Counted from the stretch's first letter, positions 1,286 through 28,961 are shown. The stretch is 64,000 nucleotides of DNA from Kudoa neothunni (GCA_964304625.1 OZ199838.1:16909469-16973468), one strand, 5' to 3'. Numbers and translations: made by a program. Notes: a model not told the origin generated them from the letters alone.

Positions 1286-2791
1286 TGGGGAAGATATCTT
1301 TCGATTATGCATGACGTTTTTTAACTCATGAAAATTTTATTCAACTTCAATTTTTGAATATAAAAGCTACAGTGATGAAAAATTAACAAAATTCCGCCAG
1401 ATATCCCTGATATATTAGGAATCCTATTTAGAAATAATGACGAGGAAGAATCTAATCCACAAAAAAAATTAAGTTCTTTGAATATATTAAAGACTTTTTA
1501 ACAAACAATGACTCGATTACTTAGGAGCACATGTAAACATCAAGAGAGCGTAAGAACAGGGAAAAGTAACCGACTTTTTTTAAAATGGAATATTACGATA
1601 GAAATCGAATTTTAAATATACACATGTGGTCATAAAAGTGCGTATTATCTATTATTTTTGGCGAATTCGCACTTTTCCCCCAATGCCAAAGAGATTCCGT
1701 ATTTTCCGTCACCCCTTATATAGTAAAAATTAATGCGATTGGCAGATAAATTATATTGGTTATCATTATGAGGAGTTGGGTTTATGTTGATTCGTTCCAC
1801 CATTACAATGAGTCTTTATTTCATATTGATCTTTTTAATGAAAATAAAATCTAACCTCAATAATTGGCACAAATATTAAAAGATTGCTATATGACATGCA
1901 TTTTGAGAAAAAGAATATTACTGAGGAATGTTATAGTGGTTACTTCAAACTACATTGAGACTGACACATTCGCTTGATTATAATATAGGGGTTTACATTT
2001 ATTAAAAATATAAGTGTGATAAAAATTGAAAATTTAAAACATTTCGTCAATTCTAATGAAACTACATGAATGATAGCATTTTAAGACATAATTCACGAAA
2101 CAACTCCCACGAATTTACATTTGTCAGCCATGTGACTAATTAAATGTGATATAACTCTATTAATATGTTATACACGTATAGTATTTTAAATTTTAAAAAA
2201 TTATTATTTATTATCCGTAAATAGAATTAACAAAAATTGTATTATATGGAAAATTTATCGCTGATTCATGCGCACACATTGAAATATTAAAACGTCGCAC
2301 TTAAATACATTTTATTATTGCAAAATGCAAGGTACATGAAGACTTTATAGTAAAAATTTTAATTTTCAAATAGCTAAATATATGTGATTATTAATAAAAG
2401 GTGATCTCATAGTTAATTATGTTAAATTTTACAACAAATCCTATTTTTAGAAAAATTAATCATCACAAGGTTTAGGTGTGCCGATAGTTATCTGGTGTAA
2501 ATACCTGTGGATATTAGTAAAAACATGTTATTACAAGGAGAAGTATTCAATAAATTTTTTTAAATTTTAAATAAGGAAAATTAACTAGACGCTCATTGAC
2601 ACAGTGAGTATTCATTTTTTGATAGGTGTTATAAAATAGAATATTAATTTAATAATAAATATCTTATGATTACTAATCTTATGTTTTGTTATAAATTGGT
2701 AATAGTATTCATATTATTAACCAAACTCAATCAGATTGAAGCATTTAATAAATATAACGAATATTTTCGCCTATACATTATAAAAAATAGA

Positions 2792-5676
2792 ATGAGGAGT
2801 TCACTTTACCAACTGGGAGTACTTTTGCTTACTCTATGTAACTAGGAATATTTATTTGCGGTTAAATTGAATAAAGTATAGTCAAATGCACTCTTCAGGA
2901 AGCAGCATCCGGAGAAGCTCTAACTCAAGTTCAACCTCCAACTAATGAACTCAAATATAAAATTGCAGAGGCAAATAATAAAATGAACGTTCAAATTATA
3001 TTAAGCGGAAATGTATACACATCATCAAATTACTGTCAGATTAAAAAGTCGAATGATGGAGCTACATTATATGAAGATATAAGTTCTTGCCCTGGAGCAG
3101 CTAACACAAATAGTGGGAATAAATGCGTTAGAAAATGCGTGGGGAATGACAACATTTTGGAATTTAACAAATTTTCCCCGAGAACGAAATATATTGTTGT
3201 TTTCAAACATAATGACGTCGAAGGGGCTGTGGCAAAAAACAATGAGGGTACTGTATTTGGGCTCGAATTACGTAATTAATTAATAGTAAATTGTAGTGTA
3301 ACGATTTATTAGGTTTAATTGTCAATCCTAACGTAGTTGTGAGCACTACAGCAAAAAGAAAATTGAAGTTTTGCACAACCACATTTCCACAACTCAAATG
3401 TCCTATATATTACAAAGGGGTTGAATATGTAGCTGGTACGGAACAAAATGGTTGTACCGCCACGGAGAACTTAAACGAAGTTGAATTTGATTTAATGATA
3501 CCTCATTACGAAGTGAAATGTGAAAATTATCCAAGTTTCTTTTATAAGCTTCAAAATGATTACACTCTATCGAAAATTGATGTTTACAAACCACAATATT
3601 ATGTAGCTTACGCTTCGGCTCAGAAAAATAAATATTCACTTAAGTTCTCGAATAAATTTCCTTTCGAAATATGTCGCTTTAGTATTAGAGATGGGAAAAC
3701 TGAAGCGACCACAAACGAATATATATCAAATTGTGGTGGGCAAGATAAACCTTGCTATGCTCCTTGCAACAATGTAGAGCTTACTTTCACTGAATCGAAG
3801 ACAATATTAGAAGTGTTGATACAAACAAGACATTTTCCACTAGAAAAAGTCAACGATGAATATAAAGGTTATACACAAAAGAAATTCGGTACGAATTTAA
3901 CATTTAAATATTTAATTATTCTTGGATAGTTGTCTCGGAAACAAATTCAGAAAATGGTGTATTAATACCTGTCATAACACATGAAAATGTGTCTTTAAAT
4001 GTGCGTCTCTTTAAACCGGTGTCGGGCCATGGATTCACAAGTTGCACCGTCACCTATTTCGTTGCTGATAAACCACCATCTACTAATGCCGTTACACCAA
4101 AATGCAAAACAAACGATGAGAATTGTGGGACTGGCTGCGATTCATTATTAGAAATAAAGGATCTTTCCAGTGGAAAACCATACATTCTTGTAATAACACC
4201 TGGACCTACAGGTACTGGTGGCGTACCAACGAATTTCAAAGAACATATATTCATTAGAACTGGTATAATAATTGATAAATAAATTTTTCATAATAAATAC
4301 TTAGAAAAAGCAACAAGCCCAATGTTCCCCGTCATAACACCAACAATAGATGAGACAACAGCGTCGATTAAAGCACTTAATGAAGAGAGAGAAATCACAA
4401 AAGACGACCCGACATGTGCATATTATATTAGCCCTCGCGGAAAGGATATATACGTATGTGCAATGTGTATTGATAGTTATCCTTGCCGAGGTTTTTGCAA
4501 AGAAACTAAACAAATTGTTGGATTAACGCCAGGCACTGAATATGATCTTAAGGTAGTTGCCCACAAAGGTTATGGATTCAAAGAGCATCAAATAAAAACA
4601 CGTACGAAACAATTGAATGATAAAAAATGATTAAATTTATAGTAATGTCAAAACTGACACTTGAAAAACAATTTACGGACAAAGGTTTCAAAGTGATGGG
4701 TTCGTTGTCGACACCAGATCCCTTCGCTCTATGCAGCTACAAAGTTAAAGTTAAAAAGGGGAAAAATTTTGAGTTGATCCACGAATGTCCAGCTACTCCA
4801 CCCCAAACAGTAGCAACTCCAAGCAAGCCTAAAAACATACCAAAGGTTTCTAAAATTTTGGTTGCTAGATCAGCTGCTGATCGAAAACCTACATCCAACC
4901 CTGAAAGTAACACTGCCACAACAACCTCATGCAGTGAACTACCTACATGCTCCGAAATAATATATACTAATCTTTACGATCGTTCCAAAAAGTACCAGAT
5001 GTTGGTAACTGCCGTTGGTGGTCGTTCAGAGGAAATCACTATTGATATCCCTGAAAGTAGTTCGATTTTAATAATACTTCTAACAAAATTCTTCTCATTA
5101 ATTTTTAATATATTAGATAATTTCTCAGTAAGCGAAGATGTCAGCAAAAAAGTAATCATTGGCATAGAACGTGAAGGGAACAAGCTTAAAGTTACAGCTC
5201 TACTTCGGAGCGATGCCCCGGAAAGCACGTGTGGTTGGGAGTTACGTAAATCTTCAGAGGATGGAAAGAGTTTGGTAAAATCGTGTAATGGTGCCAACGA
5301 CAGTGGTTGTGAAACCCTTCCATTATGTAAGGGTTTTGAAATTCTTAACATAGAAGATACTAATGATTATCATCTCACCGTATATGTGAGCAGTGATCCA
5401 ACAATAATTAGTCATGCGATAATCAAGCAAGGTAAACAATGTTGTTACTTAATTTGATAAAATATTCTTAGGTGAATCGCACGATACAATGAAATCAACG
5501 TAAGTTGTGTAATTTTTTCATTTTTAATATTCTTTTAGATCAAAAAATACCATGTATTTTTAACTACGTTTAATTATGTTTGATTATTATTCCTTAGAAT
5601 TATAGCTTCGGCAGTAGCAGGAGTCGTAGTCGTTGCTATTGGAATCGGAGTGATTATTATGAAAAGAAAGAATTAA
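2792..5676 (+). CDS. Type-I membrane protein (830 aa) with about 7 Cys-rich FN3-like repeats, 10 exons
   Basis: Hand-spliced exons 2792-2837, 2882-3271, 3313-3888, 3930-4262, 4305-4601, 4643-5056, 5117-5431, 5472-5499, 5539-5553, 5598-5676. All introns are GT-AG (39-60 nt) and give one open frame of 2493 nt. Signal peptide MRSSLYQLGVLLLTLF; repeats of C-x13-19-C-xn-C-x3-5-C followed by FN3-like strands (GLTPGTEYDLKVVA, DLSSGKPYILVI, FSPRTKYIVVF); C-terminal TM IIIASAVAGVVVVAIGIGVIIM then KRKN-stop. Confidence 0.9.
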
Positions 5677-12137: not shown

Positions 12138-14315
12138 ATGAAATGCTTGTTAAGTTGTCGTATAAGTTATCCGAAAACACGAACTGATGTTTATAAAATT
12201 AAAATATTTCGTTTTTTGTCAAGTATAAAACTTAAAGAAGACATGTTGCCAAGAAAAAAAGACAATGAGGGAATATCTCTTGCTGACAGTTATTTAAGAA
12301 GTTGGCTAAAAGTGATGAACAACTACCATGAGATAGTCAAATTTAGACAAGGAATTCGGCACGGAAGGATTCTCGCTCATCGATTCAGCAGTTTACCGTT
12401 TCGATGCAATGGATGTGGCTCATTTCTTCACACTAATAAAAGTGATAAACGTGGCTATCTTACAAATGATCAGTTTTATTGGTTGCTAAAAAATGCCATT
12501 TCATTTCATGATATTTATTGCGCAAATTGTTCTACTAATGATGATATCAGACTGCATCAAATAATTACCAAAAACGAATACATTAACGAGTTGTCGTTTT
12601 TGCACAATAAGCCAACCTTATATCTTCATGTGATTGATGTGTGTGATATTGAGGGAAGTTTTCGGATGGATTACTATCGTCAAATTCACCCCGAATCTCA
12701 TATACTGTTTGTGGTAAATAAAATAGACCTTTTGCCGACGGAAGTTACAACTTTGGAAAAACTTGACGATACAATGAAGGATTTTATCAGCCATTTCGGT
12801 AAATGGGATGCTGGACAGGTGGCTGATACAGTTTACGTGAGTTGCAAATATTTCTTTGGAGTGATATCCTTGTTCAAGCTATTGGCCCAAATTAGTCTAG
12901 ATCGAGACGTGTGTATTGTTGGAACAAGCAACTCGGGCAAATCTTCACTATTCAATCTAATTCAAAACGTGATGCATTTGAGTAAAATAAGAAATACAAA
13001 ACTAATGCCAGTTCAATCGACTGTTGGAAATTTCCCTGGAACAACTTGTGGTGTCATCAGACATCCTATAAATACTCTGTATTTACTACACGGATACAGA
13101 TACTTGAGATCACTCGTGGTTAAGGTAAATGAATTTGTATTTCTGAACAAAATTTTAGTTGATTTAGGACAAGGAAGTAGAAAAATTTAATTTGGATAAG
13201 GAAATTAACAACGAATTTAAATATTTTTACGTTGATCCAAATTTGAAAGCCGAAATATTTGGTTACAATCCACTCAAATCAACTGACAAGAAGCGTGCTG
13301 ATTACCTAGAATTGTGCCTCGAAAGCAACGCAAACGATCACATCCTACTTCATCAAGCAAATACCATTTATTCATCCCGCCCAAGAGTAAACTATTTGAA
13401 TCCAAAACACAGATTTGATCACGATAAATATTCTTGGATGTACGACACTCCTAGTTGCAGTGACAATACTGAAAGGGAGAAGTTATGTGCTAAATATGTT
13501 TTTGATGAGGTTTCCAATAATAATAACTCAGCTGTTGAGTGCTTGCGGAATATGCACATTAAACTAAAGCCTGACTCAATGGTTGCTGTTGATGATTTCA
13601 TGATAATTAGAATAGATAAAAGTGTAAACCTGAAAAAAATAATTCCAAAAGATGAGCCGTCTTCTAATAACGAATCAAATCATTTGGATATTTTCTTCTT
13701 CGTTCCACCGAAACTTTCAAGTAAAGTCCATTTGCTTCAAAAATATTCAGGTGAAGATTTATTAGTAGAAGTATGATTTCTCAGCATAATTAAACTAATA
13801 ATTTTTTCGTTGAAATTTTTTAGAGTAAAGATTATAATTTTGAATTTGTTGGAAATGGATTTAGTAAAACTGCCTGTGAAATCGAACTGAATGGCCTAGG
13901 ATGGATGACTATACTAGGACCAAGTGGATCTCTGATTAAGCTCAAAGTCTCTGTTTTAAAAAACTCAATCATTCCCACCATTAGAACAATACCAATATTG
14001 AAAATTCGACGTAAATTTGATAGTGATGACATTTTATAACATTGTGTAGCGAAAAAAGCACATTCGAAACCACTTCTTAACAAATATTTCACTGAAGGAA
14101 ATGTACATGCATTCGAAAGGAAAATAGAGCCTTGTGTTAAGCGTCATCATGAAATTAGTTTTAATCAAAGGCAATTACAAATCAACGAACTTAAAGACCA
14201 TTTGTTACAGCAGAAACCCCATCTGCAGTCAACCCAGCATCCCCACATCAACCCTCCAGAGAAAATTTTTAATGAAATTGATGTGGACGGCGAGTTTGAT
14301 CAACCTTGTGAATAA
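12138..14315 (+). CDS. NOA1: NOA1/YqeH-family circularly permuted GTPase (mitoribosome small-subunit assembly)
   Basis: Zn finger CNGCG...CANC; G4 NKIDLL precedes G1 GTSNSGKSS, G2 NFPGTT and G3 YDTP; C-terminal GLGW motif. Introns 13125-13167, 13771-13823 and probably 14011-14049 (without the last one the frame stops at about 14039). Confidence 0.85.
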
Positions 14316-22351: not shown

Positions 22352-22591
22352 TTGATTGTATGAACGGTATCGCACGAGTTACCAAGTATCGGCAATATTC
22401 GTCCACCTAACGTTAATTTATAGTTTAAACTTTTAGTTATTTTATAACATTCTGTGGAGATTCTATTAAAATTAATTTTTTTTGATATTTCCACGATTCT
22501 ATAGATAATAATACACGGCAACAGGCATCCGATTAAATTGTATAAACCCCGCAAGCGTAATCCATTGTTGATAGTGAGTCAGATTTGTAAT

Positions 22592-23158
22592 ATGGGAAAT
22601 GTGTTGTCGAATTTTTATGAGCAAATAAGAAGTCTTTTTGGTAACACTAAGGTACGAATAATAATGATTGGATTGGACAACGCTGGCAAAACCACCATTC
22701 TATATCAACTGAAATTCTGCAAAAACACCCCAACAATACCAACAATGGGTTTTAATGTTGAGACTGTGAGCTATAAAAATTTCTCACTTGTTGTGTGGGA
22801 TGTGGGTGGTCAAGATAAAATCAGACATTTGTGGAGTGTGTATTCGGCAACCTCGAATGGAATCATTTTTGTTGTGGATAGTTCCGATCCAAGACGTATT
22901 ACAGAAGCCAAAACTGAACTGTTTAATATTCTACGCGAGAAATCACTGGAAAATGTCCCCTTGCTTGTTTTCTGCAACAAACAAGATATGGTGGATAGTA
23001 TCAGTGTAGCTGAGATGAAAGAGAGACTAGGCCTCAATGAGGTTGTCGATAGAAATTGGTTTCTTCAACCTGCGGTTGCCACTGAGGGAAGTGGTCTGCG
23101 GGAAGGTCTTGATTGGTTTGTCAACCAGCTACGGTCCAACTCTATTTTTTTCAAATAG
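22592..23158 (+). CDS. ADP-ribosylation factor family GTPase, intronless, 188 aa
   Basis: MG myristoylation start; GLDNAGKTT, TIPTMGFNVETV, WDVGGQDKIR, NKQD. The true start is the ATG at 22592, not the upstream TTG used in the ORF track. Subfamily not resolved. Confidence 0.93.
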   Translation: MGNVLSNFYEQIRSLFGNTKVRIIMIGLDNAGKTTILYQLKFCKNTPTIPTMGFNVETVSYKNFSLVVWDVGGQDKIRHLWSVYSATSNGIIFVVDSSDPRRITEAKTELFNILREKSLENVPLLVFCNKQDMVDSISVAEMKERLGLNEVVDRNWFLQPAVATEGSGLREGLDWFVNQLRSNSIFFK

Positions 23159-26597: not shown

Positions 26598-28961
26598 CCC
26601 GTATAGACTATATGTTGCGATAACGCAAAAAAACTTTGTTGTTATTTTTCTCATATGTTAGTGGGTACGATGACACAACATTGATTTAGTTATTTAGAAG
26701 AATACATAAATTTTTTTTTTATAGAAAAAAATAACTTCTGCAATTTAAAATGTGACTATAATTAAATGTGCGAAAGGTCATCATTGAAGTGTTTTCATAT
26801 TCTTCCGTTTATTTCATAGCGTTAAACTCAATGATGCCAATAATTTAAAAATAATTAGATCATGATATGATAATTGTCCTTAAAATGATAGAAGCGATCT
26901 AAAAAGTTTCCTTCAAAGTTTAATATAAGGATCAATTTTTGTTGCGCAAACTTAACATATAATCTACGGCGGCAATTTTGTCATAAAATGGAGAACAAGC
27001 GTTATAATCTATACCTTGACGTAATAAATGAAATCGAAGAAAATGCGGATGAAAATCTGATCGATATAGTTATTATTCCTCCAGAAAGGGTTGATATTGC
27101 AACTGATAACGAAAGTACAAATGACAAAGACACGAATACTTTCAGCGATAATCAACTCAACAAAGAAATATCAAGTCAAGTGGAAGTAATTGATAGAGAT
27201 TTGGACGATATTGAAGACGAATTATTCTGTTGGGAGCTTAATGATTACTCAAACAGATCTGTATCCAATAGGGATCCAGATATTTCTCTGGAAGGTATAA
27301 ACAAAAGGGTTTTTATACATAATCTTAAGTATTTTATTAGATGGTTGTGACTTTTACTTGGATAAATTTGAACCCACGATTGTTGCAATGGATGAACGCG
27401 AGATTTTTGAATTGTTCTTTGACTCCAATGTCTTAAATTTGATTATTAAAGAAAGTGTCACATACGCCGGTCAAAATAACGGGATTGATTTTGACATTGA
27501 AAAAAATGAATTGATGAATTTTATTGGAATTTTGATATTGAGTGGTTATAACCGTCTTCCAAGACAACGAATGTATTGGGAAGAAGGTATGGATTGCGGT
27601 GTTGAAGCAGTAAAGAAATGTATGTCCTACAAAAGATTCACACAAATAAAAAAATATATTCACTTATGCGACAATAATTTACTTTCTGATGATGCATATA
27701 AAAATGATCGCTTTTTTAAGGTTAGAAATTATATGAACATCTTGAACAAAAACTTTCAACGATTCGGTTACTTTTCGAGATGTCTTTCCATCGACGAACA
27801 AATGATACCTTATTTTGGACATCATTCCGCAAAAATGTATATAAAAGGTAAACCAATCAAATTTGGTTTTAAATGTTGGTGTCTATGTTCGTAAGATGGC
27901 TATGTCTTCTCCACAGACATTTATTGTGGAAAAGGAACAAACATAGATAAGAAATTAGGGTTAGGTGGTAGTGTCGTAAAAAACTTTGTGAAATTGGCCG
28001 AATATCCTAGACTTCACGAGTTTTATTTCGACAATTTCTTCACTTCAGTGGGACTTTTAAACTATTTGTCTTTTTTAAACGTAAAAGCCACCGGAACGGT
28101 TCGATAAAATAGGACCCTGAAGTGTCCATTTGCATGCGATACAGTTTTCAAAAAAGAAAATCGTGGTTTTTTTGAATCATACAATGTCAACAAAGTGATG
28201 CTGGTTAAATGGAATGATACCAGGCCAGTTATTATAGGGACAAATTTTGATCAAATTGAACCAATAAAGAATGCCAGAAGGTATTCTAAGGGTAATAAAA
28301 GAGATGTGTATATTCCAATGCCAAACGTTATTGCCACCTACAGAATTTCAATAGCTGGAAAAACGTGATATTGGAATATATTTTGCAATTATATCGATAT
28401 GGCAGTTTCAAATTCACAACAAATATTTAAATTGCTCCATCCTGATACTGGGGATTCCCTTATGTTTCGAAGAACGCTTGTGTCAAAACTTTTGACTGTC
28501 AAATTCGATACAACAAGAAAACGCATGTCCTCAGTACCTTTCCAATTTACACGCAATTTATGTAGCGATAAAACTATTGAGCGACGTACGGATGAAAAAA
28601 GAGCAAGATGCAAAATTTGCAAGTCCAATACTGTGTTTGTTTGTCGTGGTTGCTGTTTGCCATGTCACCCTACTTGTTTTAACAAACTTCATTAACTGGC
28701 ACCTTACACTCAATTATTTTATTATTTTCATGCTTGTTTTTTTTAAAACAAAGTTATGTATACGATTATAAATAAATTTAATCCATTAATCCCTATGGTC
28801 GCTGTAGATTATATGTTGCGTTAACGCAACATGTTAAAGAGTATGTTAAAACAAAGATATTTTTATTATTTTAAAATATATAATTCACAAATGTATTCTG
28901 AGAGTATATACAAAATTATAGCTCTATAACTTAAGGACAAAGGGTACCGAGTCTATATGGG
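26598..28961 (+). mobile_element. piggyBac element with both ends and an inactivated transposase
   Basis: TTAA TSDs (26594-26597, 28962-28965); TIR CCCRTATAGACT; subterminal TATATGTTGCG..AACGCAA repeats. Transposase 26988-28695 with SIDEQMIPYFG, KPIKFGFK, FDNFFTS and C-terminal CKIC..CRGC..CH..CF; in-frame stops at 27892 and about 28105; deletion of the GGVD motif near 28342; 46-nt intron 27295-27340. Confidence 0.93.

Follow-up and report, generated by a model that had tools for sequence, protein, structure and literature searches.

A very large, diversified family of predicted membrane proteins with FN3-like modules in the myxozoan parasite Kudoa neothunni

The gene described here lies on the plus strand at positions 2792-5676 of a 64,000-nucleotide stretch of the Kudoa neothunni genome (GCA_964304625.1 OZ199838.1:16909469-16973468; called the window below). 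Its 830-amino-acid product, a predicted type I membrane protein, has seven modules, of which six resemble each other in cysteine pattern and one has a confidently predicted fibronectin type III (FN3) fold. It belongs to a family that is established as real, constrained, very large and diversified by mosaic exchange. We think it probable, with some reservation, that the gene is an intact member of a lineage-specific, diversifying FN3-like family that serves as a variable coat or adhesin at the host-parasite interface.

Family size and gene structure

The genome searched has 40.26 Mb, in contigs of 17.15, 12.04 and 11.05 Mb and one contig of 18.2 kb. A search with the peptide of exon 4 returned 150 scored matches (298 candidates), with a stop codon in two of the 150. 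For a stringent count, a DNA pattern was used that describes two invariant motifs of exon 3, 15 codons apart: the motif pair is found at 220 places (110 per strand) and its reversed control at none, and family size is accordingly given as at least 220. A preceding sequence-only reading of this DNA had described the gene as an orphan and proposed a search for paralogues. The orphan label is contradicted, as at least 220 near-identically built copies share the genome and colinear relatives exist in other data sets.

Copies are present on all three chromosomes, partly as arrays with a spacing of 7-11 kb. The gene at 2792-5676 is the last of a seven-copy array (C1:16.85-16.92 Mb), and contig 1 has 53 copies, 21 of them within its last 0.85 Mb; other arrays are in the middle of chromosomes, for example at C2:7.86-8.61 Mb, and the family is thus only partly subtelomeric. 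At all 29 other loci that were aligned, the homologues of exons 2-7 keep their order and orientation and are spaced similarly, and the alignments contain no stop; at one locus exon 7 is not detectable and a few exons align as two pieces. In 16 of 20 paralogues, exon 2 is preceded by a first exon of 46 nucleotides that encodes M-[KR]-x-x and hydrophobic residues and ends at a GTA donor. At the other end of the protein, all 23 paralogues checked terminate with a transmembrane helix and a tail of 1-8 amino acids, which is basic in 22. Exon 6 varies in length between 363 and 540 nucleotides, and identity among paralogues falls to 33-45%.

The tails, as read from the last exons of paralogue loci L002-L030, come in two subtypes. 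In one, the helix is followed by KRKN, KKKN, KKRN or QKR; in the other, the helix ends in a conserved G-F-Y-F-G-Y, followed by [WML]-K/R-N-K/R/Q-N/S/G.

The duplicated unit consists of the gene with 0.45-0.9 kb of upstream and 60-280 nucleotides of downstream sequence; it has ragged ends and contains no additional open reading frame. Homology in blastn alignments starts at 2161, 2189 or 2348 for array neighbours and at 1871 for a copy on chromosome 2, and identity in the region 2411-2910 is 78-92%. The upstream region shared with paralogues (2161-2791, plus strand) is a putative promoter and 5' untranslated region. Transposition of the unit as part of a mobile element was considered and ruled out by the ragged, non-fixed ends and by the lack of terminal repeats and of an extra open reading frame.

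The gene itself could be reproduced by local splicing and translation as it had been read before: ten exons with GT..AG borders give an open reading frame of 2493 nucleotides encoding 830 amino acids with a signal-like N-terminus, and all nine introns (39-60 nucleotides) have the form GTA..TAG. Exon 1 (2792-2837) contains the start codon and the signal-peptide-like sequence, M-R-S-S and a hydrophobic run that would be cleaved off, and ends in phase 1. Exons 2-7 have phase 1 at both ends and include one exon with two modules, which bears out the exon-shuffling layout claimed in the sequence-only reading. Exon 2 (2882-3271) encodes the membrane-distal, four-Cys module 1, which is among the two most variable cassettes. 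Exon 3 encodes module 2 in its first half (3313-3608), with atypical Cys spacing, and module 3 in its second half (3609-3888), with the canonical C-x19-C-x6-C-x3-C. Module 4, the second variable cassette and the one with the predicted FN3 fold, is encoded by exon 4 (3930-4262), and module 5, the most conserved, with five Cys and a sub-threshold fn3 signal, by exon 5 (4305-4601). Exon 6 (4643-5056) encodes module 6, in which a Pro/Thr/Ser/Lys-rich insert (4789-4929) separates the second Cys from the third, and exon 7 (5117-5431) the membrane-proximal module 7.

The remaining exons are short. Exon 8 (5472-5499), a stalk exon of 28 nucleotides leading from phase 1 to phase 2, was placed by its splice sites only, and the micro-exon 9 (5539-5553; 15 nucleotides) by its AG/GT flanks only; exon 9 appears to be the least certain exon, because the frame is kept when it is skipped. 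Exon 10 (5598-5676) encodes the transmembrane helix (5599-5661, 21 hydrophobic residues) and, as had been read, only KRKN thereafter (5662-5673), followed by the stop codon (5674-5676). The junctions have comparative support, since the same exon order and open frames are found in the 29 paralogous loci. The runs that contain this stretch (X1-X3) are DNA and their contigs include introns; these contigs are fragmented because of the paralogues. A metatranscriptome run gave no reads.

In modules 1 and 3-7, the Cys quartet has the spacing C-x13-19-C-x6-47-C-x3-5-C, and in all six of them it is followed by a strand of the pattern (L/F).(P/S)(G/R)..Y.(L/V).V, which corresponds to an FN3-like E-F strand motif with its conserved Tyr. 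Module 2 (first half of exon 3) likewise contains four Cys, spaced differently from those of the other six. The earlier description of about seven modules with a four-Cys and strand pattern was thus accurate, with module 2 atypical in its spacing, and the claim that the modules are highly diverged from one another agrees with the failure of BLAST to relate them. In total, the protein has 30 Cys (3.6%), one Trp and a single CxxC, in module 5.

In module 2 of this gene (window 3372-3401), the first Cys is four residues earlier (F-C-T-T-T-F or similar), and this is also the case in four of 28 aligned paralogues (L002, L004, L019 and L025). The T-C position holds the first Cys of module 2 in 79% of the sequences, and the count of four Cys is kept throughout.

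Constraint, mosaicism and fold of the modules

The ratio of nonsynonymous to synonymous substitutions (dN/dS) in pairwise comparisons is between 0.08 and 0.68 in every exon. The Cys quartets, compared module by module, are 100% conserved in 21-29 sequences: this includes the quartet of exon 2 in 21 sequences and C120, C140, C147 and C151 of module 3 in 29 sequences. Variation is distributed unevenly along the gene. Identity to the array neighbours is 93-99% for exons 5-10 and their introns, 86-94% in the middle of exon 3, and only about 74-76% in exons 2 and 4. Such a mosaic profile points to exchange between copies, by recombination or gene conversion, around modules 1 and 4 as the two variable cassettes. 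Within module 4, column entropy is 0.6-1.2 bits in the predicted strands and about 2.0 bits in the Cys loop and the FG-like loop.

Pfam has no match above threshold in any exon, consistent with the earlier statement that no named family is recognisable; the best scores are in exon 5, with none in the others. These are 17.9 bits for PF00041 (fn3; cut-off 25) and 19.1 bits for PF25059 (DSCAM C-terminal Fn3-like; cut-off 39), and such sub-threshold hits recur among 26 paralogues, with nine matching fn3 and 21 the DSCAM C-terminal Fn3-like model. When a profile of exon 5 was compared with PDB sequences, FN3 segments of titin (E 1.2e-6) and fibronectin (E 6e-3) were found.

Structure prediction was most informative for module 4. 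The AlphaFold2 model, calculated with 28 paralogues as alignment, has a mean predicted local distance difference test (pLDDT) score of 81.8 and a predicted TM-score (pTM) of 0.75. In Foldseek searches of the PDB with this model, all top hits were FN3 domains (10FN3, monobodies, tenascin; E about 2e-3, TM-scores 0.44-0.69). VIA-align, run against 48,161 chains, returned FN3 domains in all of its 50 top matches (sDscam, PTP-delta, fibronectin, LAR, tenascin), with 75-90 residues aligned at about 3 Å and Z of 6.8-8.2; Z values of 7-8 are in the range that the tool calls middling, while all 50 top rows agree. A search of the ESM Atlas with the model likewise found proteins that contain FN3 domains; an Atlas feature search gave no usable match. 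In the model, the first Cys begins strand B and the other three are in an irregular segment that replaces the classical strands C and C'.

Profile comparisons by hhalign connect modules 4 and 5 (E 7e-5), 1 and 6 (E 4e-4), 6 and 7 (E 2e-3) and 3 and 7 (E 4e-3), and cross-matches of exon hidden Markov models on modules of the relatives described below support the pairs 4/5 and 6/7. An FN3-like module is thus shown for module 4 and plausible for five others; the FN3-like fold that the sequence-only reading had assigned to all modules was confirmed to this extent.

Distribution and genomic context

A word search with exon 3 gave no match outside this genome. An exhaustive HMMER search with a profile of 29 exon 3 sequences against 1.84 billion representatives identified 17 proteins, all of them short singleton fragments from ENA or Logan assemblies. 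Source runs and assemblies of the contigs that were looked up are SRR31175926 (17-23% GC), SRR33849685, ERZ795007 and ERZ28624939. The order of modules is conserved on two of these outside contigs: L034 has homologues of exons 2-7 and L036 of exons 2-6, in the same order. Their DNA is at most 77% identical to any copy in the K. neothunni genome, indicating that they come from other species, and the family must therefore be older than K. neothunni. At the sensitivity of one exon 3 profile, the family was not seen in any named proteome, including those of annotated myxozoans. As judged by these sequence searches, it is restricted to a Kudoa-like lineage, in line with the lineage-restricted parasite family that had been suspected.

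On contig L036 (SRR33849685; 67-1065), a single open frame covers the homologues of exons 2 and 3; an intron separating module 1 from module 2 is either lacking or in frame there. An SNF5 fragment on a relative's contig, L032, matched this genome at 44%, but in another chromosome region, where no family copy was seen nearby.

The K. neothunni assembly (Weber, Paulini and Blaxter, G3 2025, PMC12239612) was built from data of infected yellowfin tuna and is described as 40.2 Mb (N50 12.0 Mb) in three chromosomes and a circular mitochondrial genome, with 30.4% GC, median introns of 49 bp, 45.6% repeats and one chromosome that ends in a (TAAACC)n telomere. The GC content of the window is also about 30%, its introns have about 45-60 nucleotides, and we located a (TAAACC)n array at the end of contig 2 (C2:12039536-12040069) and at none of the other five chromosome ends. 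A nematode origin (Strongyloides or Parastrongyloides), as an AT-rich genome of three chromosomes might suggest, was rejected, since the statistics and the telomere motif of K. neothunni fit instead; all acceptors are TAG, and an SL1 RNA model gave no match, nor did it in its controls. The paper makes no mention of surface, fibronectin or gene families. Its annotation was made by masking with RepeatModeler and RepeatMasker, followed by BRAKER3 with protein hints (PMC12239612), and the family appears to be missing from the published description, probably because repeat masking preceded the homology-guided annotation: a 3.5-kb unit in 220 copies was very likely masked. Searches of the literature for myxozoa and fibronectin type III turned up only fish gut genes, no surface antigen family of this kind is described in the literature searched, and the family is apparently undescribed. 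VSP-like, RIFIN/STEVOR-like and ETRAMP-like families have been reported from Sphaerospora molnari (preprint 10.64898/2026.02.11.705288); these are not the FN3-like family of K. neothunni.

Several other features of the window and the assembly were recorded. About 22 kb downstream of the gene is an open reading frame with a strong match to piggyBac-type transposases (27358-27894, plus strand; PF13843 DDE_Tnp_1_7, E 1.9e-43). A single-exon Arf-family GTPase is encoded at 22538-23158 (plus strand; PF00025, E 6.9e-64); its identity is 52-59% to the Arfs of every eukaryote group, so that it was uninformative as a taxon marker, and 68% to a Logan protein. Such divergence is unusual for an Arf and agrees with the rapid evolution of proteins that has been reported in myxozoans. 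A 350-amino-acid open reading frame at 12138-13190 (plus strand) has a weak GTPase (MMR_HSR1) match and is directly followed by one of 194 amino acids with no family match (13192-13776). Rfam searches of the window found nothing. The mitochondrial contig (18,219 bp) has about 43% GC in its first 10 kb, compared with about 30% in the nuclear genome, and a strong excess of A over T on the plus strand. Its COX1 (2629-4005, minus strand) is readable only if TGA encodes Trp; ARAGORN found no tRNA and Rfam no rRNA on this contig, and most of its open reading frames have no Pfam match.

Interpretation and likeness to known systems

The function that we propose follows from the predicted architecture. 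The signal peptide would route the protein into the secretory pathway, and the seven beta-sandwich modules (FN3-fold where tested), each with four invariant Cys that are probably paired in disulfides, would form a rod-like ectodomain. This would be anchored by the single transmembrane helix and the very short basic tail. As there is no signalling tail, whatever the protein does would be done by the ectodomain, displayed at the parasite surface. The family has probably grown by tandem and dispersed duplication of the gene-sized unit, and mosaic recombination or gene conversion probably maintains its diversity: beta-sheet cores and Cys are held constant, and the variation lies in two modules, 1 and 4, and in the loops of the FN3 fold. 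The most likely role of such a protein is that of a variable coat or adhesin, for binding, immune evasion or both.

Several points weigh against this interpretation. Both the gene and the whole family are known from DNA sequence alone, and the published annotation was made without parasite RNA (PMC12239612). There is no exon pair with a dN/dS above 1 and positive selection is thus not demonstrated, the copies are not exclusively subtelomeric, and the 830 amino acids contain only three N-x-S/T sites. The FN3 fold is confidently predicted for one of the seven modules: for exon 3, with modules 2 and 3, AlphaFold2 gave an all-beta model at low confidence (pLDDT 58), and module 2 has no hhalign link to any other module. 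Sequence links between the modules are weak in general, and this is why the seven modules are graded as one shown and five plausible. A further difficulty is the lifestyle of the parasite: Kudoa plasmodia grow within muscle fibres, and in this setting an ectodomain rich in disulfides would be exposed to the cytoplasm of the host.

A more far-reaching version, to which we give only tentative credence, is antigenic variation in the style of protozoa in a metazoan parasite, with an FN3 scaffold, a repertoire of at least 220 cassette-like genes that gene conversion diversifies in modules 1 and 4, and expression of one or a few of these genes at a time on the parasite surface. Antigenic variation of myxozoans is documented without a known mechanism (preprint 10.64898/2026.02.11.705288), and this version, if true, would provide the missing molecular basis. 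It is unlikely that the proteins instead mediate adhesion among the cells of the parasite or its recognition of self and non-self, in its cell-in-cell organisation, plasmodium fusion or sporogenesis, by analogy with the allorecognition genes of Hydractinia. Tandem beta-sandwich ectodomains on a transmembrane anchor and clustered polymorphic paralogues in a cnidarian lineage would suit such a role, and the best structural matches, Dscam, PTP-delta and NCAM, are animal adhesion molecules that typically have FN3 arrays. However, a tail of 1-8 residues is too short for signalling motifs, and at least 220 copies among about 5,300 annotated genes would be extreme for housekeeping adhesion.

Slightly less probable again is a structural role in the spore, on the valve or shell surface or associated with the polar capsule, with expression confined to sporogenesis and many copies for bulk production. 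Extracellular modules stabilised by Cys are suitable for a resistant extracellular structure and the conserved upstream region of the copies is compatible with co-regulation, but families for bulk production are usually homogenised, whereas in this family the cores are conserved, the loops as well as modules 1 and 4 have diversified strongly, and paralogues are as little as 33-45% identical. That the family is a non-functional repeat, either transposon-borne or a decaying pseudogene family with the gene model as a by-product of open frames, we regard as very improbable. The copy number is high, 45.6% of the genome is repetitive, gypsy and piggyBac elements are nearby and RNA support is absent for a family read from DNA. 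All of this is outweighed by nine conserved introns with preserved phases, by 148 of 150 exon 4 matches being open, by dN/dS well below 1 and invariant Cys, by the ragged unit ends with no terminal repeats, and by the conservation of the architecture in other species.

If real and expressed, the family would be among the largest in a Kudoa genome, with at least 220 copies compared with 5,316 annotated genes, and it is a concrete candidate for host-interface or immune-evasion molecules of myxozoans. Myxozoans cause large losses in fisheries and aquaculture, and K. neothunni is a parasite of tuna muscle. The modules also represent a new, cysteine-stapled variety of the FN3 fold that is beyond recognition by sequence models, and the practical warning is that large lineage-specific gene families can be hidden by de novo repeat masking.

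The closest parallels to the proposed variable coat or adhesin in other parasites are the variant-specific surface proteins (VSPs) of the Giardia type and the VSP-like proteins of S. molnari. These too are large families of type I proteins with a Cys-containing ectodomain, a single transmembrane helix and a very short, conserved basic tail, and surface variation is their proposed function (preprint 10.64898/2026.02.11.705288). However, Cys makes up more than 10% of VSPs, which also have CXXC motifs and fold differently, in contrast to 3.6% Cys, one CxxC and an FN3 scaffold in the Kudoa protein. The tails also differ (KRKN, KKKN or KNKN in the Kudoa family, CRGKA or [KR]x[KR]xK[KR] in VSPs), as do the numbers (18 VSP-like genes in S. 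molnari, at least 220 in the Kudoa family), and the likeness is one of analogy only.

With animal FN3 proteins (fibronectin, tenascin, Dscam, PTP-delta/LAR, titin), the Kudoa protein shares the beta-sandwich fold, as in module 4, the E-F strand motif with Tyr, and tandem modules, each with its phase 1-1 exon, on a transmembrane anchor. It differs by its four invariant Cys per module, three of them in the segment that replaces C-C', where classical FN3 has none, by missing the Pfam gathering scores, and by an architecture that is fixed at seven modules and a tail of four amino acids with no other domain type. Modules of class I cytokine receptors likewise combine the FN3 fold with four conserved Cys, but the spacing of the Cys is different, cytoplasmic box motifs and D1-D2 pairs are missing from the Kudoa protein and, unlike in these receptors, the WSxWS motif is absent from the 830-amino-acid translation with its single Trp. 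Among cnidarians, Hydractinia Alr is a clustered, polymorphic family of transmembrane proteins with tandem beta-sandwich domains that are missed by sequence-based detection. Alr proteins, however, are built of Ig-like domains and carry long tails for signalling; the fold of the Kudoa family is FN3-like and the tail of its member in the window has four amino acids.

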